From the NCBI GenBank assembly GCA_965644315.1, contig CBFFRQ010000128.1:1-15787 (forward strand): 15,787 nucleotides of DNA, read 5' to 3'. Each line of letters begins with the position of its first letter. Position 1 is the stretch's first letter. The notes beneath the pieces were generated by a model. The model searched no databases, had not been told where the DNA came from, and worked only from the letters and a program-made list of their open reading frames with translations. Made by a program: the position numbers and the translations under genes. The stretch is from Caecitellus pseudoparvulus (Eukaryota > Protista > Bigyra: Bicosoecida). Shown piece by piece: positions 1 to 15,787 of this stretch.

Positions 1-1522
1 TAACCCTAACCCTAACCCTAACCCTAACCCTAACCCTAACCCTAACCCTAACCCTAACCCTAACCCTAACCCTAACCCTAACCCTAACCCTAACCCTAAC
101 CCTAACCCTAACCCTAACCCTAACCCTAACCCTAACCCTAACCCTAACCCTAACCCTAACCCTAACCCTAACCCTAACCCTAACCCTAACCCTAACCCTA
201 ACCCTAACCCTAACCCTAACCCTAACCCTAACCCTAACCCTAACCCTAACCCTAACCCTAACCCTAACCCTAACCCTAACCCTAACCCTAACCCTAACCC
301 TAACCCTAACCCTAACCCTAACCCTAACCCTAACCCTAACCCTAACCCTAACCCTAACCCTAACCCTAACCCTAACCCTAACCCTAACCCTAACCCTAAC
401 CCTAACCCTAACCCTAACCCTAACCCTAACCCTAACCCTAACCCTAACCCTAACCCTAACCCTAACCCTAACCCTAACCCTAACCCTAACCCTAACCCTA
501 ACCCTAACCCTAACCCTAACCCTAACCCTAACCCTAACCCTAACCCTAACCCTAACCCTAACCCTAACCCTAACCCTAACCCTAACCCTAACCCTAACCC
601 TAACCCTAACCCTAACCCTAACCCTAACCCTAACCCTAACCCTAACCCTAACCCTAACCCTAACCCTAACCCTAACCCTAACCCTAACCCTAACCCTAAC
701 CCTAACCCTAACCCTAACCCTAACCCTAACCCTAACCCTAACCCTAACCCTAACCCTAACCCTAACCCTAACCCTAACCCTAACCCTAACCCTAACCCTA
801 ACCCTAACCCTAACCCTAACCCTAACCCTAACCCTAACCCTAACCCTAACCCTAACCCTAACCCTAACCCTAACCCTAACCCTAACCCTAACCCTAACCC
901 TAACCCTAACCCTAACCCTAACCCTAACCCTAACCCTAACCCTAACCCTAACCCTAACCCTAACCCTAACCCTAACCCTAACCCTAACCCTAACCCTAAC
1001 CCTAACCCTAACCCTAACCCTAACCCTAACCCTAACCCTAACCCTAACCCTAACCCTAACCCTAACCCTAACCCTAACCCTAACCCTAACCCTAACCCTA
1101 ACCCTAACCCTAACCCTAACCCTAACCCTAACCCTAACCCTAACCCTAACCCTAACCCTAACCCTAACCCTAACCCTAACCCTAACCCTAACCCTAACCC
1201 TAACCCTAACCCTAACCCTAACCCTAACCCTAACCCTAACCCTAACCCTAACCCTAACCCTAACCCTAACCCTAACCCTAACCCTAACCCTAACCCTAAC
1301 CCTAACCCTAACCCTAACCCTAACCCTAACCCTAACCCTAACCCTAACCCTAACCCTAACCCTAACCCTAACCCTAACCCTAACCCTAACCCTAACCCTA
1401 ACCCTAACCCTAACCCTAACCCTAACCCTAACCCTAACCCTAACCCTAACCCTAACCCTAACCCTAACCCTAACCCTAACCCTAACCCTAACCCTAACCC
1501 TAACCCTAACCCTAACCCTAAC
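1..1522 (+). repeat. Terminal telomeric repeat tract (CCCTAA)n, C-rich strand, ~253 units; left chromosome end
   Basis: Uninterrupted CCCTAA hexamers from base 1 to ...CCCTAAC at 1522; C-rich strand at the 5' end is the expected polarity of a left telomere. Confidence 0.99.
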
Positions 1523-4444
1523 TTTCCAAATGTCAAGCTAATCACAAGTTGTGAAGTGCTAACATTGCCTAATCCAGGCGCTCGTGCACCCAAGTGTGGT
1601 GTTGCACAGTGCTTGCTGGTTGGGTGGTGCGCACCGGGGCGGGGTAGTGCGAATTCCGCACACCATCGCACCGTGGCTCCCAGTTTGCGCCCTCGGTCGG
1701 GGCATGCACCTGGGATCGACATCAAAAGCATCATTGACAAGCATCATGAACGCCCAAGTGGATCAAGTCCTGGGGGTCCTCTTCGTGGAGGGGTGCCTGA
1801 AGCGCAAGCAAGTGCTCGGCCCCAGAACAGGTGTCTTCACTGACATGCCACGTCGGGGTGCCGCACGCACCTTCGAGCTTGGAGGACCCCTGCCCAAGAC
1901 TGATCATGATAGTTCATCTTCGGCACGGGACATGTGGCTCGAGGTCTATGGGGAAGCCGCCGAACGGCTGATCCCAGGGCTGAGTGCGGAATTCGGCAAC
2001 GCCAATGCGGCCCTGCGCCAGGGACCCACCGGATCGCCAACCATCCTCGTCACGCTCGGAAGTGAGGGTGATTCACCAACAGTGGCACGTCAACTTCGCA
2101 TTCTTGCTGCTCAAGAGGACGACTTCGCCATTCGAGTCGGCCAAGGTGGGTTCGTCGCCGTGGCCTACACCAACACCAAGCAGTTCGCATCGGCGAAGGC
2201 GAAAGTGAAGGTGAAGGCCCACCCCACCGCCATCCAAGTGGCCCACCAAGTGACCAAGGAAGCAACCGAAATCGCCTGCCAGTCAGGTGATGTTGCCAAG
2301 GTCATGTGCCTCGTTAGGTCCCACTTCGACCATGGCCCCGTGCCAGCCCAAGCCGTCCGTCCCAGTGTCAGACAATCCGTCCCCTCCGAGGGTGATGCAC
2401 CTGTCGACACCAAGACACCATCGACCTGGACTGACACTCAGCTCGACAAGGCACCGAAGAAGAAGAAGACCCGTCGAGGCAAGCGAGGAAAGGGCAAGTC
2501 AGCCGGACGATCCCTCACCTTCGAGGACGTCTTCATCAAGAACGTCCGGCCACCTGCACCTCGACCAACCTCACCACCTGCCACCCAAGGCTCACCCAAA
2601 GATACCGTCACCACCCCTGTGGTGCATGCCATGTTGCCTTCATCAAGGGTGCAGCGGGGCGTCGACCGCAAGTGGCCGTCCCCCACCCCGTCGGGCGAGG
2701 CAAGCCCCGAGGTGCACCGGTATCGGCCGTCTGCAGCAGCAGCATGGGAGGTGATCACAAGGGTGGTGCCTCTTCATGACAGTGTGCGGACACCCGAGCA
2801 CCTGGCCGAGTACCCCATCAAGCCTGGCCCTCTGGCCGACCTGCTGTCATCGACCCACGTGTACTCTAACGTGGGGGGCGGGCCTGTGTCCAGGCCTGTC
2901 TCGAGACGGCAGCAGGGGAGAGGGTCTTCGAGGCTGGGGACCTCCTCCTACTCCAGCATGCAGCCACCATCAACGCTGCCCAGCTTGCCTTCAAGCACAT
3001 GGTCAGGCAGCTGGAGGGGGTGGTCAGTGACTCGTCCAGCTCGGACATCATGGACGTCGGCCAGAAGCCACCCTCCCCCTTCCGCTCAGACGGGCAACGG
3101 GTGGCCGTCTTCCGCAACATGCTGCACCAGCACTCGCCGGATGACACCTTCCTGGCCCCAGGTACACCACCAGTCCTGCTTCCCGGCCTGCACCTGCTCA
3201 TCGACCGCATCAACCAAGGGTACCGTGCCCCAGCCGGGCATGATGACCTTGGCCAGGCCGGCGTCGACCCCAGCCAGGTTGATGAAGAGGGTGACCAAGA
3301 GGGGCACCTCGACGGAGTGCTGTATGCCTTCGCACTTCGAGAGGTGTGGACCGACAACACGGCCCATCTGCAGCTCATCCTCGTCGACCATGATCGAGGC
3401 AAGCTGGTGCTGTGGAACCCCGACATCCCTGACCTCCATGACGAGCTGCCCCTGCACAAGTGCATGACCCGGCTGGCAGCCGAAGGCATCAACGTCTTGT
3501 ACCGGATCTGGACCACACCCGAGGCGGGCAGTCCAGCACCCTTCCGGGACAGGCTTCGAGGGGCACTCCAGTCTCTCCGAGATGACTTCCCCCCCCTGCC
3601 TCACAAGGCCACCGACGGCACCGTGCACCCCCAGACCCTCATCGCTGGCAAGGGCACAAGGGTGGCCATGCCTCATGGGCGGATGACCCGACAGCAGGCC
3701 GCCACCCTGGAGGCTGAGGTCAAGGACCCCCTCAAGCGGCTGGTGCCTGAAGACGGCGAGGGTCGCCTGCCCAAGGTCAAGGATGTGCCCCACATCTCGA
3801 TCGGGCAGATGGGTGGACGCCTGATGTAAGTCACCTGTGGGGGCATACTCCCTGTGCCACACATGACTGAAGCTTTGTGTCGCGACCGACGCACATAGCT
3901 GACATCGGACATTGGAAAGTCCAACCCAACCTCACCATCACCAACCCAACATCGATACCAACACATCAGGACTCGGCTCAGTGGAAGGGGAAGGCACTTG
4001 CAGCAAGATCTGTGAGGCCGCCCCCAAACCTGAGCCGAAGGGACAGCCGGGCTGGGTCGTGTGCTTGCATCTCAGCAACACCCAGTCCGTGTCGAGTCCA
4101 TATCCTCCAGCCCACACCGCCACCCAAGCCAAGCAAGTCGGGTCTCCACCCCTGGACATCGGACCGAGACGGACGAGACTGGACTGGACGGACAAGACAA
4201 GAGTGGACCGAGACCTGGACCTACACCTCAAGACCATCCCACCGGGGCGGGCGCTGAAGCGCCAAGACAGACGGCGACTTATACAACGGACACGAGTCTG
4301 TGCTAGTCGCAAAGCCGTGCAAGCGGTGCCGTCGTGGTGTCTGTGTCACTGCATTCTGTTGTGGCGCAGGTGGCACCACATGTCCAAGCCCAAGCTGTAC
4401 CATGATGTAGCCTGCATGGAGGCAATCTGCAATGCATTGAGTAG
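1523..4444 (+). mobile_element. Telomere-embedded 2922-bp element, distal copy (unclassified)
   Basis: Begins TTTCCAAATG and ends GCATTGAGTAG; flanked by CTAAC at 1518-1522 and 4445-4449; repeated at offset 2927/2928 with identical ORF translations. Confidence 0.9.
1746..3829 (+). pseudogene. Frameshifted copy of the element ORF (G6 instead of G7); may be a sequencing error
   Basis: G-run 2873-2878 has 6 G versus 7 G at 5800-5806 in copy 2, splitting the ORF into 1584..3467 and 2999..3829. Confidence 0.7.
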
Positions 4445-4449
4445 CTAAC

Positions 4450-7372
4450 TTTCCAAATGTCAAGCTAATCACAAGTTGTGAAGTGCTAACATTGCCTAAT
4501 CCAGGCGCTCGTGCACCCAAGTGTGGTGTTGCACAGTGCTTGCTGGTTGGGTGGTGCGCACCGGGGCGGGGTAGTGCGAATTCCGCACACCATCGCACCG
4601 TGGCTCCCAGTTTGCGCCCTCGGTCGGGGCATGCACCTGGGATCGACATCAAAAGCATCATTGACAAGCATCATGAACGCCCAAGTGGATCAAGTCCTGG
4701 GGGTCCTCTTCGTGGAGGGGTGCCTGAAGCGCAAGCAAGTGCTCGGCCCCAGAACAGGTGTCTTCACTGACATGCCACGTCGGGGTGCCGCACGCACCTT
4801 CGAGCTTGGAGGACCCCTGCCCAAGACTGATCATGATAGTTCATCTTCGGCACGGGACATGTGGCTCGAGGTCTATGGGGAAGCCGCCGAACGGCTGATC
4901 CCAGGGCTGAGTGCGGAATTCGGCAACGCCAATGCGGCCCTGCGCCAGGGACCCACCGGATCGCCAACCATCCTCGTCACGCTCGGAAGTGAGGGTGATT
5001 CACCAACAGTGGCACGTCAACTTCGCATTCTTGCTGCTCAAGAGGACGACTTCGCCATTCGAGTCGGCCAAGGTGGGTTCGTCGCCGTGGCCTACACCAA
5101 CACCAAGCAGTTCGCATCGGCGAAGGCGAAAGTGAAGGTGAAGGCCCACCCCACCGCCATCCAAGTGGCCCACCAAGTGACCAAGGAAGCAACCGAAATC
5201 GCCTGCCAGTCAGGTGATGTTGCCAAGGTCATGTGCCTCGTTAGGTCCCACTTCGACCATGGCCCCGTGCCAGCCCAAGCCGTCCGTCCCAGTGTCAGAC
5301 AATCCGTCCCCTCCGAGGGTGATGCACCTGTCGACACCAAGACACCATCGACCTGGACTGACACTCAGCTCGACAAGGCACCGAAGAAGAAGAAGACCCG
5401 TCGAGGCAAGCGAGGAAAGGGCAAGTCAGCCGGACGATCCCTCACCTTCGAGGACGTCTTCATCAAGAACGTCCGGCCACCTGCACCTCGACCAACCTCA
5501 CCACCTGCCACCCAAGGCTCACCCAAAGATACCGTCACCACCCCTGTGGTGCATGCCATGTTGCCTTCATCAAGGGTGCAGCGGGGCGTCGACCGCAAGT
5601 GGCCGTCCCCCACCCCGTCGGGCGAGGCAAGCCCCGAGGTGCACCGGTATCGGCCGTCTGCAGCAGCAGCATGGGAGGTGATCACAAGGGTGGTGCCTCT
5701 TCATGACAGTGTGCGGACACCCGAGCACCTGGCCGAGTACCCCATCAAGCCTGGCCCTCTGGCCGACCTGCTGTCATCGACCCACGTGTACTCTAACGTG
5801 GGGGGGCGGGCCTGTGTCCAGGCCTGTCTCGAGACGGCAGCAGGGGAGAGGGTCTTCGAGGCTGGGGACCTCCTCCTACTCCAGCATGCAGCCACCATCA
5901 ACGCTGCCCAGCTTGCCTTCAAGCACATGGTCAGGCAGCTGGAGGGGGTGGTCAGTGACTCGTCCAGCTCGGACATCATGGACGTCGGCCAGAAGCCACC
6001 CTCCCCCTTCCGCTCAGACGGGCAACGGGTGGCCGTCTTCCGCAACATGCTGCACCAGCACTCGCCGGATGACACCTTCCTGGCCCCAGGTACACCACCA
6101 GTCCTGCTTCCCGGCCTGCACCTGCTCATCGACCGCATCAACCAAGGGTACCGTGCCCCAGCCGGGCATGATGACCTTGGCCAGGCCGGCGTCGACCCCA
6201 GCCAGGTTGATGAAGAGGGTGACCAAGAGGGGCACCTCGACGGAGTGCTGTATGCCTTCGCACTTCGAGAGGTGTGGACCGACAACACGGCCCATCTGCA
6301 GCTCATCCTCGTCGACCATGATCGAGGCAAGCTGGTGCTGTGGAACCCCGACATCCCTGACCTCCATGACGAGCTGCCCCTGCACAAGTGCATGACCCGG
6401 CTGGCAGCCGAAGGCATCAACGTCTTGTACCGGATCTGGACCACACCCGAGGCGGGCAGTCCAGCACCCTTCCGGGACAGGCTTCGAGGGGCACTCCAGT
6501 CTCTCCGAGATGACTTCCCCCCCCTGCCTCACAAGGCCACCGACGGCACCGTGCACCCCCAGACCCTCATCGCTGGCAAGGGCACAAGGGTGGCCATGCC
6601 TCATGGGCGGATGACCCGACAGCAGGCCGCCACCCTGGAGGCTGAGGTCAAGGACCCCCTCAAGCGGCTGGTGCCTGAAGACGGCGAGGGTCGCCTGCCC
6701 AAGGTCAAGGATGTGCCCCACATCTCGATCGGGCAGATGGGTGGACGCCTGATGTAAGTCACCTGTGGGGGCATACTCCCTGTGCCACACATGACTGAAG
6801 CTTTGTGTCGCGACCGACGCACATAGCTGACATCGGACATTGGAAAGTCCAACCCAACCTCACCATCACCAACCCAACATCGATACCAACACATCAGGAC
6901 TCGGCTCAGTGGAAGGGGAAGGCACTTGCAGCAAGATCTGTGAGGCCGCCCCCAAACCTGAGCCGAAGGGACAGCCGGGCTGGGTCGTGTGCTTGCATCT
7001 CAGCAACACCCAGTCCGTGTCGAGTCCATATCCTCCAGCCCACACCGCCACCCAAGCCAAGCAAGTCGGGTCTCCACCCCTGGACATCGGACCGAGACGG
7101 ACGAGACTGGACTGGACGGACAAGACAAGAGTGGACCGAGACCTGGACCTACACCTCAAGACCATCCCACCGGGGCGGGCGCTGAAGCGCCAAGACAGAC
7201 GGCGACTTATACAACGGACACGAGTCTGTGCTAGTCGCAAAGCCGTGCAAGCGGTGCCGTCGTGGTGTCTGTGTCACTGCATTCTGTTGTGGCGCAGGTG
7301 GCACCACATGTCCAAGCCCAAGCTGTACCATGATGTAGCCTGCATGGAGGCAATCTGCAATGCATTGAGTAG
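4450..7372 (+). mobile_element. Telomere-embedded 2923-bp element, proximal copy (intact ORF)
   Basis: Same termini as copy 1; flanked by CTAAC at 4445-4449 and 7373-7377, the latter continuing as telomeric repeats. Confidence 0.9.
4673..6757 (+). CDS. Element-encoded ~694-aa protein: basic NLS-like patch, Pro-rich linker, candidate papain-fold cysteine protease domain
   Basis: Long ORF with G/C-ending codon bias; ATG 4673 has A at -3 (alternative ATG 4631; the track's 4511 start is GTG). Motifs KKKKTRRGKRGKGK, SNVGGRACVQACL and HLQLILVDHDRGKLVLWNP. Function inferred only. Confidence 0.8.
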   Translation: MNAQVDQVLGVLFVEGCLKRKQVLGPRTGVFTDMPRRGAARTFELGGPLPKTDHDSSSSARDMWLEVYGEAAERLIPGLSAEFGNANAALRQGPTGSPTILVTLGSEGDSPTVARQLRILAAQEDDFAIRVGQGGFVAVAYTNTKQFASAKAKVKVKAHPTAIQVAHQVTKEATEIACQSGDVAKVMCLVRSHFDHGPVPAQAVRPSVRQSVPSEGDAPVDTKTPSTWTDTQLDKAPKKKKTRRGKRGKGKSAGRSLTFEDVFIKNVRPPAPRPTSPPATQGSPKDTVTTPVVHAMLPSSRVQRGVDRKWPSPTPSGEASPEVHRYRPSAAAAWEVITRVVPLHDSVRTPEHLAEYPIKPGPLADLLSSTHVYSNVGGRACVQACLETAAGERVFEAGDLLLLQHAATINAAQLAFKHMVRQLEGVVSDSSSSDIMDVGQKPPSPFRSDGQRVAVFRNMLHQHSPDDTFLAPGTPPVLLPGLHLLIDRINQGYRAPAGHDDLGQAGVDPSQVDEEGDQEGHLDGVLYAFALREVWTDNTAHLQLILVDHDRGKLVLWNPDIPDLHDELPLHKCMTRLAAEGINVLYRIWTTPEAGSPAPFRDRLRGALQSLRDDFPPLPHKATDGTVHPQTLIAGKGTRVAMPHGRMTRQQAATLEAEVKDPLKRLVPEDGEGRLPKVKDVPHISIGQMGGRLM

Positions 7373-7376
7373 CTAA
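6848..7376 (+). CDS. Possible second exon of the element gene (after putative intron 6754-6847); stop codon lies in the junction CTAAC
   Basis: GTAAGT at 6754, CTGAC at 6827-6831 and first downstream AG at 6846-6847 join ORF1 in frame to the 6840..7376 ORF, which has no ATG of its own near its start. Same in copy 1 (intron 3826-3919, exon 3920-4448). Confidence 0.4.
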
Positions 7377-7722
7377 CCCTAACCCTAACCCTAACCCTAA
7401 CCCTAACCCTAACCCTAACCCTAACCCTAACCCTAACCCTAACCCTAACCCTAACCCTAACCCTAACCCTAACCCTAACCCTAACCCTAACCCTAACCCT
7501 AACCCTAACCCTAACCCTAACCCTAACCCTAACCCTAACCCTAACCCTAACCCTAACCCTAACCCCTAACCCTAACCCTAACCCTAACCCTAACCTACCC
7601 CTAACCCTAACCCTAACCCTAACCCTAACCCTAACCCTAACCCTAACCCTAACCCTAACCCTAACCCTAACCCTAACCCTAACCCTAACCCTAACCCTAA
7701 CCCTAACCCTAACCCTAACCCT
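7373..7722 (+). repeat. Inner telomeric tract (CCCTAA)n, ~58 units, with a few variant units
   Basis: CCCTAA repeats, with CCCCTAA near 7563-7569 and CCTACCCCTAA near 7594-7604; ends CCCT|CGCAGG. Confidence 0.98.
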
Positions 7723-9302
7723 CGCAGGCCTTGCAGAGACAAGTCTCCAAAGGGAACCTTTGTCAGGCCTGTCTCGTCGTGCCCAACGCAAAACGGCTGG
7801 CCTTCCCAGATAGGCAACCGCAGCACCATAGCCTCCAAAATGCCGTCCACGAAGATGGGAGAGCACCCTGGCGTCCACTCGATGCCCTTTTCGCCTTTCT
7901 CGGCATTCGGAAGGCACTTTTCCTCGGCGAGCCCTGTCATCAGCGCTTCGAAAACGTCCCACACCGTCGCCTTTTGTCGTCGAAAGGCATCTCCTGCGTC
8001 AATCATCCAGCCGAAGTTGTCGGTCAAGGCCTCCAAAGTTGCTTCGTCTGTGTTGAGGAGTCTCTGGATGAACTGCTCATCCACAACACCTGCATCTTGC
8101 AGCTGCTTCTTGGCCGCACCTTCGCCTCGCTTCTTCAACAGCAGCATTGCACGGAGTGGCACGGCCAAGTTCACAACTCCCAGCGCACGAGCTTGGCTGT
8201 TGAACCACACAGTGCGAGCAGCCAGTCCAAGCGCTGCCTTGAAGTCGGAAACCATGCTTGCGGAGACATGCTCCCGCAACTCCTCTTTGCAAAATGCGTC
8301 CACGTCACACTTGGCCAGCGAGTCCACAGAGTGCGAGCAGAGCCTCTTCAGAACCTTGACTCTGTCTTCAGCTTTGGCAGCGCCCTGCATCAACTTCAGG
8401 GCGGTCTTCACAACCCCACACCGCTTGAGGGATTCCCACAGCTCGTCGCCAGCAGCTTCCTGAAGAATCAAAAGCGACGAGGCACTATGGTACAAGGCTC
8501 CAGTGAGTGGGTTGAACACAACGTGGAGAGGCCTCAACTCACCTTGCAAACCTGCACTTCTCTGTCCGTGGCTTCCTGTGCTTCAACCTTGCCCTGCTTC
8601 GATTCAATCTCCAGCAGCTTGGCCTGTACCTGACTCAGGTACGTCGGCAAATTCTTCTTCGCCCACACTTGAGTAACGCGACTGAAAAGGCCCATCCCGA
8701 TTGAACTGATCAGTTTACCTTCGTGAGCCAGTTTCAAGCTGACGTCGATTGGCATGTCAAGAAGAGAAGCAAGGACTTTGATTTGTTTTTCGGTACTTTC
8801 ATTCTCGAATCGAATCCCAAAATCAACTTGAGCTACGAAGCCGCTTGAGACGAGGGCTTGAAGCAGGTTCACGTCTGGAGCTGTCTGTGAACAAGGTCAG
8901 TCAAAGTGCAGGGAACAGCGCTTCATTCAAGCGTGGAACATGCACGCAGCAACGAACCTCTAGCTTCTCGACGGCAGCAAGGGCCAACTTTGCAACCCGT
9001 CCTTGTGGATACAGACCACCAAATGTCGTCAGCAGCTTCTCTTGCTGGCTCTCCTCCAGCTCAGTCCACCATGCCGTGCTCGGAAGCACTTCGCTGGCCT
9101 TCCGAGGTCCCTCTGTCAGAGAACCAGCCACAGATGAAGCATGGCGTGACAAACTGGGTGCCTGGTGCGGCTTCGGCACACATAGTGGCCGCCAGTGCAC
9201 AGCGGCAGCAGCCAATTCCGCCCCAACACTGCGCAACGCCAACAGAGACCGCACTGACGCTCCCACAGCACGTGACAGAGTCAGTGCAGCTTTCAAGTTC
9301 AT
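7723..9302 (-). pseudogene. Spliced gene truncated at its 3' end by the telomere tract; exons ~9302-8958, 8884-8543, 8459-7723; possible P-element-like transposase N-terminal half
   Basis: Introns 8957-8885 (GTTCGT..CTGAC..CACAG, 73 nt) and 8542-8460 (GTGAGT..TTTTGATTCTTCAG, 83 nt) are both phase 0 and join three ORFs in frame; the frame runs into GGGTTA repeats without its own stop. 5' end uncertain. Confidence 0.75.
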
Positions 9303-9795
9303 TGCGTCCCAGAAATGCTTGCGAGCGCGGCAGGTGCTGCGAGTGTACGCCCACTTTCAAGGCTGCGCTGGTGCGGAAGTGTGGCCGAAGGTTTGAAGCG
9401 CAGAGCTGCACGTTGAGCGGAGGTGAGGCAAGTCTGGGCACGATGTGCCAGATGTGCATCATATGTGGTATGCTGCAGGAGATGCCTGGGATCCAGTTTT
9501 TGTCTGGTTGGGCGAATCTGATTCTGGCACTTCCCAAGTCAAATTCCGCACCCCTCAGTGACTCACGCGGTCCACGAATGATGCTAAATAGAGTCAGCAC
9601 AAGCGGAAGCGACCAACATCACCCTCAAACTGAGAGGAAACCCTTGCAGTGCCAGCAATCGCAGATGGGCCAAGTATCGGCAACCATGAGCCCACACAAC
9701 CTCAGCAGCATGGTGCTGTACTCGCGGCGCACCAGCACAGCCACGCCCACACTCAGGCAGCCATGGAGCGCACCAAGTGCACGCTTGATGACAGG

Positions 9796-10552
9796 CTAGC
9801 CCAACGAGCGGTGTGCTATCGTCTGAAGTCCGTGCTTACCAAGGCCAAGGGTTCTACATGTCTGGTCGAGCACCCTTGGCTGCGTGCCCTGGTATCACTT
9901 GCCCCACAGCCTGTGCCATGCGACAGTTGTATCTTTCAACTTGCTTGTATAAAACTGCAGCTTGAAGAGCAGGTGCTGCTGCTGCCCCGTCAGACAACCG
10001 AGCAGCGCCTCCATGCCCAGCAGCTCTGTGCAGACGGCTTGCACTGCAGCCTCACGCTCCGGCAGCTGTGCTGCGTGCAAGAGGCGTGACAACACCGCTG
10101 TTGCTTTGGAGGTGGATGATCAAATGGCCGCGCACGCATCTGTGAGCCGTGCGACCTTCACCTGTGCCTCATGCCGCTCTTGCATCCAGCCCTGGAGCCA
10201 GGCAGCTTGTGTATGGTGGCTTTGCGAGCTGGTTGTGAACACCTGCACCACACGTTCGGCCTCATGTGTTTCTTGGGTATCTCTTTCTGAAGCTTGCAGC
10301 TCCGCTGCCACGAACTCACACTCCTGTCGTGTCTCGGCAACCACTTCTTCCAGTGCGGCAAGTTTGGCGCCTGCTGCGGCGAGGAGATGGTCGTGTTGCA
10401 GGGCACCTTCCAATCACTTGACGCGTCGGTGTCCGGCAAGGTGCACACCTTCGGATTCCACATGTGCCGTCAGCTCAGCTGGTGCTGCATCTGATTCGCG
10501 TTCGCTTGGAAGGCCAGGCAAGGCTCCTGGCGGGGGCACGTTGCTCGTCTCA
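9796..10552 (-). pseudogene. Decayed reading frame with coiled-coil-like segment, abutting the transposon left end
   Basis: ORFs 10414..10617, 10120..10413 and 9895..10095 share one frame, separated only by single stops (TGA 10414, TGA 10120, TGA 9895, TAG 9796); A/E/Q/L-rich translation. Confidence 0.4.
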
Positions 10553-12440: not shown

Positions 12441-14705
12441 TCACTGTTTGAGCAAGCCACGAACTCGATCCCAATGTTGTCTCAGTGGTGAAACCATGAG
12501 AGCTAATGGCTCGATTGGAAATTGCGACAGCAAAGTACACTCTCCTGCAAGCCGTCTGTAGCCCTCGGTTGCCTCAATATCTTCAAACAAGTGTGCTTGC
12601 TTGCCGTCCGCGGTTGTGACCTGCTCCTCTGCTCCATTTTCATGAAAGCTCCACAATCGCACCATTGTTGCACCGTGCAGAGTTTCACTATCGACAAGCC
12701 AGTAGCCCCACTCGTCGCAATCTCCCCCTGAGTACCGTATGGGGTCGATTACTTGCCAGAGTTGTCCATGAACAAGGGCGTGCTCCACTCTCCGATCGGG
12801 ATCCTGCCTCGCTTGCTTGGCCCTCCCTTCTGCTTCCGATTCCAGTGTTGGCTGATGAACAGTACCATCGTAGTCCAAGTTGGGGGCACGAGCCCGTTTT
12901 CTTCGCCTTCTCCTGTGAGCCATGCCATCTCGTTTGGGGCAAGCATCTGCGTGCGCCTCCTTGTCTACTGCATCCTCACTGAGAGCCATGGGGCCACCCC
13001 CAGGACTGGAAGGAACCCCAGCTCCCTCCGTCTCTATTCGCCGTAGTTGTGCACGAAGCCAACTCATACCCTGACCGACCGACTCAAGCATCATTGCATG
13101 GTCCGGGTCAATGCAATTTAAAATTGAGTTTGCGAGCTGGAGCCAGTATAACGTGCTTCCCTGCTTCGCCAGCCGACGTCCACACCGGCGCTTGGCAAGT
13201 TCATGCCACTGCTTGTGAAGTAGAGACCGATTTCTTCTTGCGACGTATCTGGGATGTGCTGTGTGGTATGTCCTGGGTCTTTGCGGCTCGTACGTGCTGG
13301 AATGAGTCAAGACACTGCGAACTTGTGCTGCAAACTGGTGCATGCCCGCCCTTGCGATTCGACCATCTACCCATTCTGCGGATCGAGCACGCTTATTCTC
13401 CCACATGGCCCGGAAGTTTGCCGCAGCAACGACTGTCTCCACGAGGTCGACTACATGGCTCTCCCTGCCAACGGTGAACCTCATTGTTCCGAACCGCGTG
13501 CTGAATCGGGGGTTGAAGCACTTGACATGGTGTATAGCGTTCTCGACCACTATCCTGAGCTGTGTGATCATCCTACTTCGCATCTCGCGAACAAATGTAA
13601 TGCCAACAGCCGCGTCAAGAAGTTCCTCTGAAAGGGGGTGACTACTGGTCCCGCAGCTCCGCAGAGATTCAATGGACTCCCCCCAAGCTTTCTGAGATGT
13701 GGCAGATACAGGGACAAGCATGTCAGCGCGAGCTGCGTATCCCCCATCGACAATAGCTTTGTCTCCATCTTGTAGCACCCCGAGCGACTTCAGCTTGCAG
13801 TGAAGCTTCATCGCGGCTGGTCCCTCTGCAGAGCTACCCCTGCCAGTCTCTTGTACTCCAACTATGGTACCGTCCAGAAGGACGGCCAATATGAAATCAT
13901 GACCCCGTCCCCCCTCGAGGTGGTGCATGTTTGCCCTACTTGGATCATCTGCGGAATCCTGGGTCAAAGGAACCGTGAACCCATCGTATGCGACGACCAC
14001 ATTTCCCAAAATTCCCCCATACATGCTGTGCATACGCTTTCGTTGCAGCTCTGTTGGTGGTCGCCACAGAAATCGGGTAAGAACCTCCTTCACAATTGGT
14101 AGCAGCCGTCGAGAGAAGTTCTGAACGCTTCTGGCGCTGCACCCAAGCGCGTCTTCAATGTCTGACGCAGTCCGGCCACGAACCAGCGCGAGGACTGAGA
14201 AGCAAGCGACGCTGGTGTGGTACCCCTGCCCGTGCAGGCCACCTTGCCTTCCCAGTACTTCCCGTTCCACTCTTGACACCAGAGCAGACGCTGCATCTGG
14301 GGTGAATCCAGTCCAACGTCTGCACGAACGCTCGCTCCTCAGCAGGCGTGACACGGCCGCCATAGCCGCCTCGTTGTTCATGCGCTGATAGCGCCGAGGG
14401 GCACCTTGACTGGTTCCCAACCTTGCACCAGTGAGTCCACGAAGAGCGTCAGCAAGCCTGCAGGCACTTACCACCCTATCTACCAATTCCATGAGCAAAT
14501 CGGCCGAGCTGGACAGGCTACTGTGCACAGCTGTCAAGAACATGGCCTCTCTCACTCCAAACAAAGGTTTCTCCACCAAGAACAGCGCACTTTGTGTTTG
14601 GCGTGGTGGTTGTGGCCACACTGCCAATTGACGATCAATGCTCATCACCGGTAGCGGCCGAAGTGGTCCAAGGTGAGACCTGAAGGTAGAAAGCAAGGGA
14701 ATCAT
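12441..14705 (-). CDS. DDE transposase of the IS5-related PIF/Harbinger/ISL2EU (DDE_Tnp_4-like) type with long C-terminal extension
   Basis: Ordered motifs RRWTGFT, HTH-like SDIEDALGCSARSVQNFSRR, GNVVVAYDGFTVPL (D1), DGTIV...GSSAE, GDKAIVDGGY (D2), RIVVENAIHHVK (E). 5' end may be spliced (acceptor-like CCTTCAG near 14680, GTAAGT near 14471). Confidence 0.85.
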   Translation of the reverse strand: MIPLLSTFRSHLGPLRPLPVMSIDRQLAVWPQPPRQTQSALFLVEKPLFGVREAMFLTAVHSSLSSSADLLMELVDRVVSACRLADALRGLTGARLGTSQGAPRRYQRMNNEAAMAAVSRLLRSERSCRRWTGFTPDAASALVSRVEREVLGRQGGLHGQGYHTSVACFSVLALVRGRTASDIEDALGCSARSVQNFSRRLLPIVKEVLTRFLWRPPTELQRKRMHSMYGGILGNVVVAYDGFTVPLTQDSADDPSRANMHHLEGGRGHDFILAVLLDGTIVGVQETGRGSSAEGPAAMKLHCKLKSLGVLQDGDKAIVDGGYAARADMLVPVSATSQKAWGESIESLRSCGTSSHPLSEELLDAAVGITFVREMRSRMITQLRIVVENAIHHVKCFNPRFSTRFGTMRFTVGRESHVVDLVETVVAAANFRAMWENKRARSAEWVDGRIARAGMHQFAAQVRSVLTHSSTYEPQRPRTYHTAHPRYVARRNRSLLHKQWHELAKRRCGRRLAKQGSTLYWLQLANSILNCIDPDHAMMLESVGQGMSWLRAQLRRIETEGAGVPSSPGGGPMALSEDAVDKEAHADACPKRDGMAHRRRRRKRARAPNLDYDGTVHQPTLESEAEGRAKQARQDPDRRVEHALVHGQLWQVIDPIRYSGGDCDEWGYWLVDSETLHGATMVRLWSFHENGAEEQVTTADGKQAHLFEDIEATEGYRRLAGECTLLSQFPIEPLALMVSPLRQHWDRVRGLLKQ

Positions 14706-15165: not shown

Positions 15166-15787
15166 TCTCAGCAAGACACTCTCTCCCCGCATTGGCACAA
15201 CTCAAACCGCGCGTTCCCAACGGCGACGAAAATCCCGTCAGGAAACCGCCATCCACTAAAGTTCTTCAACCCATGATCAGTGTGTGCCTGTATACCCCTG
15301 CGCTGTGTCAGGAAGTGGTGCGTGCGCGCAGGCGTGTCGCGAGTAGTTGCGATAAACAAGCAAGTACTTCTCACACAATCTGTGCATAAGCGCTGACACA
15401 GCGGCATCATCTGCATGATCACAGACTTGGCATCATCAAGATTTCAAAACTTCCCCTGCCGCAAACCTGTTGCTCTTCTGCGAGCCATCACGGAGCTTCA
15501 CTCGCACAAGCTTGCCGCAACCTGTACCACCAACTTCAGCGTCGGCCACTGGCGTCACTCACCATGGCAACTTATGATGATCCGGAAAATCTCGCAGACC
15601 GGTGGAAAGCCACCTGTGAAGAGGAGAATGCAGATCGGCTGTGGCACATCTTGCTACAAGCCAGCGTTCGGACTGCCACTTTGGCCGAGGCACTGACCAG
15701 CTCAGACATAACAGCTGGGTTTCAGGTTGCATGTGGAAAGGGTCACTTGGAGTTGATGTGTGGGTTACTGGCCCTGACTGGGGCGCG

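Follow-up and report, generated by a model that had tools for sequence, protein, structure and literature searches.

A probable non-autonomous retrotransposon confined to the telomeres of Caecitellus pseudoparvulus and its autonomous LINE relatives

Layout of the locus

We analyzed a 15,787-nt stretch of DNA from the bicosoecid Caecitellus pseudoparvulus (GCA_965644315.1), hereafter the window, and a 2.93-kb protein-coding element within it, which we call A. The window comprises an entire contig (C128; CBFFRQ010000128.1) of an assembly of 30.6 Mb in 215 contigs. BiP/HSP70 of this genome is 83-84% identical to the proteins of Cafeteria and Bicosoecida sp. ms1 and 90% identical to environmental proteins, a weak pointer to a heterotrophic stramenopile; Halocafeteria, with a 7-mer telomere repeat, a genome of 38.8 Mb and a GC content of 46.8%, is excluded. 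Because it opens with a pure (TAACCC) array, we read it as a left chromosome end presented along the C-rich strand. Two copies of A lie head to tail between this terminal tract and an internal telomere tract, with a start-to-start distance of 2927/2928 nt. The features of the array are listed below; ORF stands for open reading frame and UTR for untranslated region.

1..1522, no strand: terminal telomere tract, a perfect (TAACCC) x 253.7 array of the C-rich strand that runs from the chromosome end inward
1520..4449, plus strand: element A, copy 1 (distal), full length, ORF frameshifted
2873..2878, plus strand: run of six G in copy 1 (G6), with a counterpart of seven G (G7) at 5800-5806 in copy 2
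4447..4449, plus strand: AAC joint, at once the last bases of copy 1 (...GAGTAGCTAAC) and the first bases of copy 2 (AACTTTCC...); the copies meet at this microhomology and no telomere repeat separates them
4447..7377, plus strand: element A, copy 2 (proximal), full length, ORF intact
4447..4672, plus strand: 5′ leader of copy 2, 226 nt ahead of the ORF
4673..6757, plus strand: A ORF of copy 2, 694 aa plus stop (6755-6757), conserved ATG, 7-G frame
6758..7377, plus strand: 3′ UTR of copy 2, including a 19-nt tandem repeat
7182..7376 (copy 2) and 4254-4448 (copy 1), plus strand: structured 3′-terminal module common to the autonomous families described below, closing with ATGCATTGAGTAGCTAA(C) and followed by telomere repeat
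7373..7722, no strand: internal (proximal) telomere tract, ~350 nt with a few variant repeats, with subtelomeric DNA beyond

Both units open with AACTTTCC and close with GAGTAGCTAAC. The copies thus have precise ends and lie between telomere tracts, as the original prediction for this locus had described them. The same prediction held that the element lacks terminal inverted repeats, long terminal repeats (LTRs) and poly(A) and has no visible mobility enzyme. We looked for inverted repeats, LTRs and poly(A) in the A unit of the window and found none, and the A ORF had no Pfam match at E≤0.1. We regard the internal tract as the old chromosome end that received the elements.

The sole difference between the two copies is the length of the G-run. 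The ORF of copy 1 starts with an ATG at 1746, its frame is broken at the 6-G run, and the downstream part stops at the TAA at 3827-3829; the 7-G run of copy 2 keeps the frame open. The difference may be genuine variation or may stem from homopolymer error in long reads. The 19-nt tandem repeat (2.2 copies, 81% match) lies at 4168-4208 and 7096-7136 in the two 3′ UTRs.

Copies of A across the genome

We catalogued the copies of A from genome search tables, about 50 fetched loci and the lengths of 11 contigs. At least 47 full-length copies of ~100% identity were recovered when the assembly was searched at the DNA level. For an exhaustive pattern search of the whole 30.6-Mb assembly, we used the last 24 non-telomeric bases of A as the query and obtained 71 exact matches on 48 contigs. 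The reversed control gave none, so the recurrence of the A 3′ end is not due to chance. For all 59 plus-strand matches, the distance to the left contig end is at most 29.4 kb, and for 58 of these it does not exceed 15.1 kb. On the minus strand there are 12 matches, situated 0.1-11.5 kb from the right end where this distance was measured (C12, C13, C34, C42, C111, C114, C145 and C194, with C129, C137 and C151 left out). Large contigs bear A at their ends only (C13, 0.98 Mb; C18, 1.35 Mb; C30, 0.68 Mb; C42, 0.73 Mb; C43, 0.77 Mb; C34, 0.24 Mb), and neither the assembly-wide 24-mer search nor the DNA search found a copy inside a large contig. At the level of the assembly, this excludes a mainly non-telomeric distribution, the outcome that the original prediction had named as speaking against it.

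In 71 of 71 copies the 5′ end faces the terminus, in keeping with the predicted polarity of an ORF on the C-rich strand whose 3′ end points toward the centromere, and A is the most distal element at many chromosome ends. About 52 full-length copies could be scored for the G-run: ~29 are intact (G7) and ~23 are frameshifted (G6). The 5′-truncated copies begin at unit positions 245, 1027, 1184, 2425, 2720, 2758 and 2825, and every one of them reaches the exact 3′ end. Given the near-identity of the 71 copies, these findings point to recent or ongoing activity.

Autonomous relatives with endonuclease and reverse transcriptase

The original prediction had proposed a search for longer relatives that share both ends with A and encode a reverse transcriptase (RT), and such relatives are present in the same genome. 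Two of them, element B (7.75 kb; on C18, C30 and C135) and element D (7.6 kb; at C5:260-7895), share with A the first ~100 nt and a covarying 3′ structure, and encode a homologue of the A protein, an apurinic/apyrimidinic endonuclease (APE) and an RT. B lies two to four telomere repeats beyond an A copy and is sometimes tandem. In the B polyprotein, the N-terminal ~800 aa are homologous to the A ORF: the A protein and B ORF1 are 42% identical over ~780 residues (E 9e-170), and identity to ORF1 of the other families is 37-42%. Downstream of the ORF1 homologue, B encodes an APE with a full-length match to Exo_endo_phos (PF03372), followed by an RT (RVT_1, PF00078, E 9e-31). In the B copies on C30 and C135, the N-terminal region and the full-length APE share one 1327-codon frame and the RT occupies a 1041-codon frame, while the genome search revealed single open frames of 2200-2386 codons in other copies of the clade. 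The shared frames and the unbroken long ones indicate that the autonomous elements are single-ORF long interspersed nuclear elements (LINEs) composed of an N-terminal ~800 aa, an APE and an RT.

Three B copies (L037 on C18, L039 on C135 and L040 on C30) differ almost only in homopolymer length, plus one substitution. The differences affect C or G runs of 5-7 nt and each shifts the reading frame, which suggests that they are long-read errors and that such errors are systematic in the assembly; broken ORFs elsewhere in this genome consequently need caution. The APE motifs SWNV, LTE, GDLN, LDH and SDH and the RT motif YADD are intact in B, and all autonomous families retain an apparently intact APE. 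Pfam found no further domain in the RT frame of B, and thus no restriction-like endonuclease (RLE) downstream of the RT. The closest solved structures to the B RT are the R2 and L1 reverse transcriptases. The best public RT matches are merely 25-33% identical and of mixed architecture, with no close affinity to any named clade.

In the alignment, the A protein stops (...HISIGQMGGRLM) exactly where B runs on into the first APE motif (...VGKSSSIPVSLVSWNV). A thus has the anatomy of a LINE 5′ leader, N-terminal protein and 3′ UTR from which the APE and RT have been removed.

Searching the assembly with the B RT core yielded ~100 matches in at least eight identity classes (100, 84, 74, 70, 61-63, 56, 45 and 33-36%). 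Where their position was measured, practically all lie at low plus-strand coordinates or on the minus strand near right ends; this statement excludes matches at C79:358-359 kb, C147:54 kb, C164:49 kb, C206:11 kb, C23:10 kb and C201:2.8 kb. No interior LINE of the B clade was clearly seen among the ~100 matches. The match on C147 (G000:C147:54437-55549, minus strand) is 36% identical to the B RT and lies inside a 3394-codon open frame, a distinct and unusually long LINE-like ORF.

The genome also contains a match to Telomerase_RBD (79 bits; G000:C77:25738-26142, minus strand) in a 1389-codon open frame. This frame is likely the telomerase reverse transcriptase (TERT) gene, apparently intronless in this stretch, and the presence of a telomerase gene fits the kilobase-long pure repeat tracts.

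A shared 5′ leader and 3′ RNA module

Over its first ~100 nt, A shows 92-93% identity to both B and D, though the proteins are only ~40% identical. This leader presumably serves as an internal promoter, a 5′ RNA signal or both.

At the other end, the last ~190 nt can be aligned across A, B, D and two additional families, E and F. The alignment contains the common blocks ATACAACGG, GCCGCTGTGGCG, CAAGCTGTA and AATGCATTG, and all members finish in CTAA(C). RNAalifold predicted a branched structure of 38 pairs, ten of which show compensatory changes. Overall, 96.2% of the alignment cells are paired, none of 500 shuffles matched the observed covariation or pairing, and sliding the partners by 1-3 columns lowered pairing to 27-56%. 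A covariance model built on the module gave 46 hits in 182 kb of fetched loci, all of them at sense-strand element 3′ ends, and none in the 8 kb of subtelomeric DNA of the window or in a control locus. The families that it recovered were only those already found by other searches. Structured 3′ ends are the handle by which stringent LINE RTs such as those of R2, SART1 and UnaL2 pick their template. From this anatomy we infer that the shared 3′ structure may be the basis on which A is mobilized in trans.

One locus (L019:4782-5041) carries a further element 3′ end, 'G', which has the motif CAATGCATTGAAC...CTAA but contains an A9 run and diverges upstream. At E≤0.01 this end was not detected by the covariance model, and it may represent a more distant family.

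Junctions with telomere repeats

The fetched loci contain 36 distinct sequences downstream of the A 3′ end. In 34 of these junctions, the telomere-like tract after the conserved GAGTAG measures 4-72 nt with the element's own CTAA counted (median, ~16 nt); in the remaining two, one of which is that of the window, it measures ~346 nt. Terminal telomere tracts at these loci are mostly 0.9-5.3 kb long. At several joints without a complete repeat, A abuts a 5′-truncated LINE of another family (L036, L011, L018), a 5′-truncated A (L019) or unique DNA (L030, L023). The repeat register also differs from one junction to another (CTAACCC, CTAACCT, CTAACCCC), and repeats are missing altogether from some joints. 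In L008/L013, L025, L027 and L034, telomere repeats enclose A 3′ fragments of only ~10-27 nt.

Joints between two A copies take several forms. The AAC-overlap joint of the window occurs 13 times; in others, 6, 12, 56 or ~347 nt of repeats or additional A's (CCCAAAAACTTT) are present, differences which indicate independent events. Junctions between A and B are identical on different contigs, such as C18 and C30. Full-length copies have an exact 5′ end, to which 1-3 extra A's are added in occasional cases. No A-run or poly(A) was found at the 3′ end of A in the window or the fetched loci, where the element ends in GAGTAGCTAAC.

The A protein

A word-indexed search with the A protein returned a single relative, a 97%-identical protein, and a profile search of 1.84 billion cluster representatives returned only a 48-aa fragment. 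The relative, A′, is encoded on a 3.1-kb metagenome contig from the European Nucleotide Archive (ERZ1643211, k127_4434497; L053), which comes from a short-read assembly of another sample. This contig consists of telomere repeats, A′, two repeats and a B-like 5′ end that opens with AACTTTCCAA, a sequence absent from B of this genome. These findings indicate that a close relative of the organism, with the same system, was present in that sample. Comparison of the A and A′ ORFs revealed 40 synonymous and 20 non-synonymous differences (dS 0.079, dN 0.013, dN/dS 0.165), whereas only 1 of 226 nt differs in the leader. The low dN/dS shows that the ORF is under purifying selection, and the leader is constrained even more strongly.

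Two features were noted in the protein:

5384..5425, plus strand: basic patch KKKKTRRGKRGKGK, in the linker
5744..6595 (residues ~358-641), plus strand: predicted papain-like cysteine-peptidase-fold domain, from a fold model and a family alignment

The AlphaFold2 (AF2) model of the whole protein was poor (predicted local distance difference test, pLDDT, 44). Modelled alone, the C-terminal domain reached a pLDDT of 71.6 and a predicted template-modelling score (pTM) of 0.71. The original prediction had recommended a structure search. Foldseek gave only weak matches to the C-terminal domain (E≥0.025, the value of 0.025 being for a Josephin domain), while the top 27 rows of an exhaustive structural comparison were all papain-like cysteine peptidases. 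Josephin deubiquitinases led this list with Z scores of 8.2 (root-mean-square deviation 4.1, 159 aligned), 7.6 and 7.2. An atlas shape search returned Peptidase_C70, C39 and C2 at template-modelling (TM) scores of 0.33-0.59, and the language-model look-alikes were C58 and C39, at 0.87. At the sequence level, neither Pfam nor the profile search matched the domain. CVQAC is invariant at a predicted helix start, with N or D at position -6 in every family row, and AHLxLI at a strand start and WNPD are present in the family rows that reach that region. These motifs match the usual oxyanion/Cys/His/Asn layout of papain-like enzymes, and a papain-like fold of the C-terminal domain is moderately supported by the models and alignment.

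For the N-terminal half (aa 1 to ~370), the structure atlas search returned no usable match; on visual impression, its GGFVAVAY stretch resembles an RNA-recognition motif. The basic patch is possibly a nuclear localization signal or a nucleic-acid-binding stretch. A motif search found no CCHC knuckles in the A and B proteins.

Proposed mechanism and alternative explanations

Our findings suggest that A is probably a non-autonomous, telomere-specific non-LTR (LINE) retrotransposon, an ORF1-only derivative of the single-ORF APE+RT clade that is mobilized in trans and likely end-primed. The original prediction of a non-autonomous, telomere-specific element thus stands, and of the two routes that it offered, the anatomy of A argues for mobilization in trans. 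Amplification through a circle received no specific support and is not needed, as we found no circle-specific junction or feature. Toward priming from the chromosome 3′ end, taken by itself, we lean only slightly.

The proposed cycle would begin with transcription of A, driven by a promoter inside the conserved leader, after which the RT/APE protein of an autonomous relative (B, D or another family) would recognize the shared 3′ structure. The terminal ...CUAAC of the RNA would pair over 3-5 nt with the 3′ end of the G-strand (...GTTAG or ...GTT), and the paired end would prime reverse transcription, so that the cDNA lengthens the chromosome. Aborted synthesis would leave 5′ truncations and very short 3′ fragments. 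A finished cDNA would end in ...GGAAAGTT-3′ (...GTT-3′). Extension of this end by telomerase would give joints of CCCT with AACTTTCC; alternatively, its pairing with AAC in the RNA that follows would produce direct AAC-overlap tandems like that of the window. Very short or eroded ends would be the main sites of addition. The A protein would probably act like Gag/ORF1p in ribonucleoprotein formation and in nuclear or telomere targeting, and we speculate that its papain-like domain might process the polyprotein or strip ubiquitin-like modifiers.

Several considerations weigh against this account, which draws throughout on assembled sequence. The near-100% identity of the copies and the recurrence of identical junctions across contigs also fit spread by chromosome-end recombination. 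The apparently intact APE of all autonomous families argues that nicking may be involved at some stage, and that priming may not depend on chromosome ends alone. The short interstitial tracts could stem from later shrinkage or breakage, and a nick at the telomere base is compatible with them as well. If the G6 frameshift is real, many A copies (~23 of ~52) are non-coding. The copy counts themselves may be inflated, both by small carrier contigs that are possibly redundant for the same ends and by end-to-end recombination. Finally, the DNA search of the assembly found no autonomous element with an A-type ORF1, which makes A an independent lineage rather than a recent deletion product.

The most serious alternative retains the same LINE but has it insert internally in the manner of TRAS/SART, the partner APE nicking the G-strand within double-stranded repeats to start target-primed reverse transcription. 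The intact catalytic motifs in every autonomous family and the telomere repeats on both sides of the elements in the window agree with such a route, and the terminal CTAAC would pair with a nicked G-strand too. However, random nicking in a 1-2-kb telomere should leave proximal tracts of broadly spread length, whereas they measure 4-72 nt in 34 of 36 junctions, against 0.9-5.3 kb for the terminal tracts. This favors addition to short or eroded ends, and so do the joints made without a full repeat, straight onto truncated elements or unique DNA, and the variable repeat register. We therefore consider internal insertion by nicking unlikely, although it deserves to be kept in mind. It is improbable, in our estimate, that A is a subtelomeric repeat now spreading at the DNA level like yeast Y′, by break-induced replication, unequal exchange between chromosome ends or rolling-circle copying of excised circles, with a LINE ancestry that is merely historical. 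Such spread would account for genome-wide copies of ~100% identity, for the recurrence of identical A-A (n=13) and A-B junctions across contigs and for the exact ends of tandem dimers, and the flanking subtelomeric DNA is itself a multi-copy family. It does not readily explain 36 distinct 3′ junctions with varied neighbours, graded 5′ truncations with an intact 3′ end, fragments of ~10-27 nt or the absence of a circle-specific junction type. Nor would it predict purifying selection on the ORF, a leader far more conserved than synonymous sites, or a covarying 3′ RNA structure common to RT-encoding elements.

Slightly less probable again is that A represents a domesticated host gene family whose LINE-derived protein has been retained for capping or telomere-length control. 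The dN/dS of 0.165, the outermost position of A at many ends and its coexistence with telomerase would suit this idea, but purifying selection is equally expected of a mobile element that needs the protein for its own transposition. Moreover, copy number, truncations and element-like termini are transposable-element traits, and no function is known for the A protein. That chimeric or mis-polished long-read contigs produced the telomere-element-telomere layout seems hardly credible. Many carriers are indeed small contigs, and the three B copies differ almost only in homopolymers (one substitution), as is typical of long-read error; yet 48 contigs show the layout, among them large ones (0.24-1.35 Mb) that carry it at their ends, and it is found again on the independent short-read metagenome contig from another sample.

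Retrotransposition of A in trans, with the end priming set out above, leads to a broader proposal that we offer tentatively, as one more likely to need revision than to survive intact. The diversified APE-LINE clade, with the RT-less A as its most successful member, might constitute a second system of end extension beside telomerase. In such a system, RNAs ending in CUAAC, which is similar to a telomerase template, would be primed without a nick by bare 3′ ends, above all critically short or broken ones, finished copies would be reusable by telomerase or by the next element, and the Josephin-like domain would represent a new LINE 'Gag'. If true, a unicellular eukaryote would harbor a living link between ordinary LINE retrotransposition and the synthesis of chromosome ends in the manner of telomerase.

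Comparison with known systems

The closest functional counterpart of the A/B system is HeT-A with TART/TAHRE of Drosophila (Jockey clade). In both, chromosome ends carry head-to-tail arrays whose elements all have the 3′ end on the centromere side, show variable 5′ truncation and stack on eroded earlier elements, and HeT-A, like A, is an abundant Gag/ORF1-only element reliant on RT-encoding relatives. In contrast to the host of HeT-A/TART, this genome has kilobase TTAGGG tracts and a TERT gene. The elements differ as well: A ends in a telomere-like CTAAC rather than oligo(A), the A and B proteins lack the CCHC knuckles of the HeT-A/TART Gag, the A protein has a predicted papain-like domain, and the autonomous partners are single-ORF elements whose RT has no close affinity to a named clade.

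Among telomerase-positive hosts, the closest analogues are TRAS/SART, MoTeR1/MoTeR2 and FoTeR. TRAS1 and SART1 (R1 clade; Bombyx and other insects) are, like the elements described here, APE-type LINEs confined to telomeric repeats. They have two ORFs, a zinc-knuckle Gag, poly(A) and a fixed site set by a sequence-specific APE, whereas the elements of this genome have a single ORF, lack poly(A), vary in junction register and are mostly followed by proximal tracts of near-zero length. MoTeR and FoTeR are grouped with the CRE/SLACS-type LINEs that use an RLE, and the MoTeR2 protein is unrelated to that of MoTeR1. In the present system, by contrast, the endonuclease is an N-terminal APE and the A protein is a true homologue of the N-terminal region of the autonomous elements. 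MoTeR1/MoTeR2 (Magnaporthe) and FoTeR (Fusarium) reside in the TTAGGG telomeres of telomerase-positive microbes; MoTeR1 encodes an RT and has in MoTeR2 a shorter partner that lacks one but has the same ends, and the arrays contain short interstitial telomere tracts (PMC7367193, PMC12857005). For SART1, work cited in PMC10088271 describes the 3′ UTR structure as important for template recognition.

Other comparisons concern single traits. Athena/Coprina, which are endonuclease-less Penelope-like elements (PLEs), share with the present elements a uniform terminal polarity and the proposed priming of a complementary RNA 3′ end by the G-overhang. They differ in having PLE RTs without endonuclease, as opposed to a LINE-type RT with an upstream APE. 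Lists of telomeric retrotransposons and of endonuclease-less Penelope-like elements are available (PMC10088271, PMC12857005). HAL1, or 'half-L1', resembles A in being a non-autonomous LINE lineage that has the first protein only and forms a family of its own; unlike the strictly telomeric A, it is genome-dispersed and polyadenylated. In NeSL and Utopia, a cysteine-protease domain lies at the N-terminus of the LINE polyprotein (PMC4640811) and thus upstream of the RT, as the predicted domain does here. NeSL and Utopia are RLE-type elements with a sequence-detectable Ulp1 (C48) domain, whereas the present elements are APE-type and their domain is recognized by predicted fold only, the nearest being Josephin-type (Z 8.2). 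Yeast Y′ elements also form tandem copies at chromosome ends with short telomere tracts between them and a uniform orientation. They encode a helicase, spread by recombination and have no LINE relatives, whereas A has both LINE relatives and a 5′-truncation series.

GilM/GilT and Zepp are polyadenylated, and we know of no described ORF1-only partner for GilM/GilT, Zepp or Tx1-1_ACar. Compared by description only, these elements resemble those studied here in lying in or beside telomere repeats, partly in tandem, in non-insect hosts. All are telomere-associated LINEs, of Giardia, Chlorella and Anolis, respectively (PMC10088271).

With no oligo(A) or poly(A), no zinc-knuckle Gag, an APE rather than an RLE, a LINE rather than a PLE RT, and telomerase present, the elements belong to no named family. 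Judging from these features, they would constitute a system of telomere-specialized non-LTR retrotransposons with a non-autonomous partner that falls outside the named families. A literature search found no description of them, although a publication beyond its reach could exist.

Retrotransposons dedicated to telomeres have been described in only a few lineages, namely Drosophila, Bombyx and other insects, Magnaporthe, Fusarium, Giardia, Chlorella, rotifers and an anole. Such elements bear on the relation between retrotransposons and telomerase and on how a selfish element may turn useful to its host. The genome analyzed here combines TTAGGG telomeres with at least eight diverged and seemingly end-confined LINE families and an ORF1-only partner in 71 near-identical copies. 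Their 3′ ends finish in telomere repeat, not poly(A), and their junctions suggest addition to nearly bare ends. If the organism can be cultured, it would offer a system for the study of end-primed reverse transcription, of trans-mobilization through a 3′ structure and of competition or cooperation with telomerase. The A protein may also add a new domain type to LINE biology.

Subtelomeric DNA of the window

Proximal to the internal telomere tract, positions 7730-10550 of the window belong to a subtelomeric repeat family; at least ten other contigs (C176, C87, C107, C163, C193 and others) have stretches of 74-91% identity to it at 12-30 kb from their ends. Two ORFs in the subtelomeric DNA, at 7590-8549 (minus strand) and 7731-8633 (plus strand), have no Pfam match. 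A 754-aa ORF at 12441-14705 (minus strand) has a sub-threshold match to DDE_Tnp_4 (E 0.019; 15 bits versus a cut-off of 24.8) and may be a remnant of a Harbinger/PIF-like transposase. The last ~600 nt of the window (15170-15787) are a dispersed repeat with more than 25 copies of 68-97% identity, some of which lie inside large contigs, e.g., at 204 kb on C17 and at 92 kb on C149.

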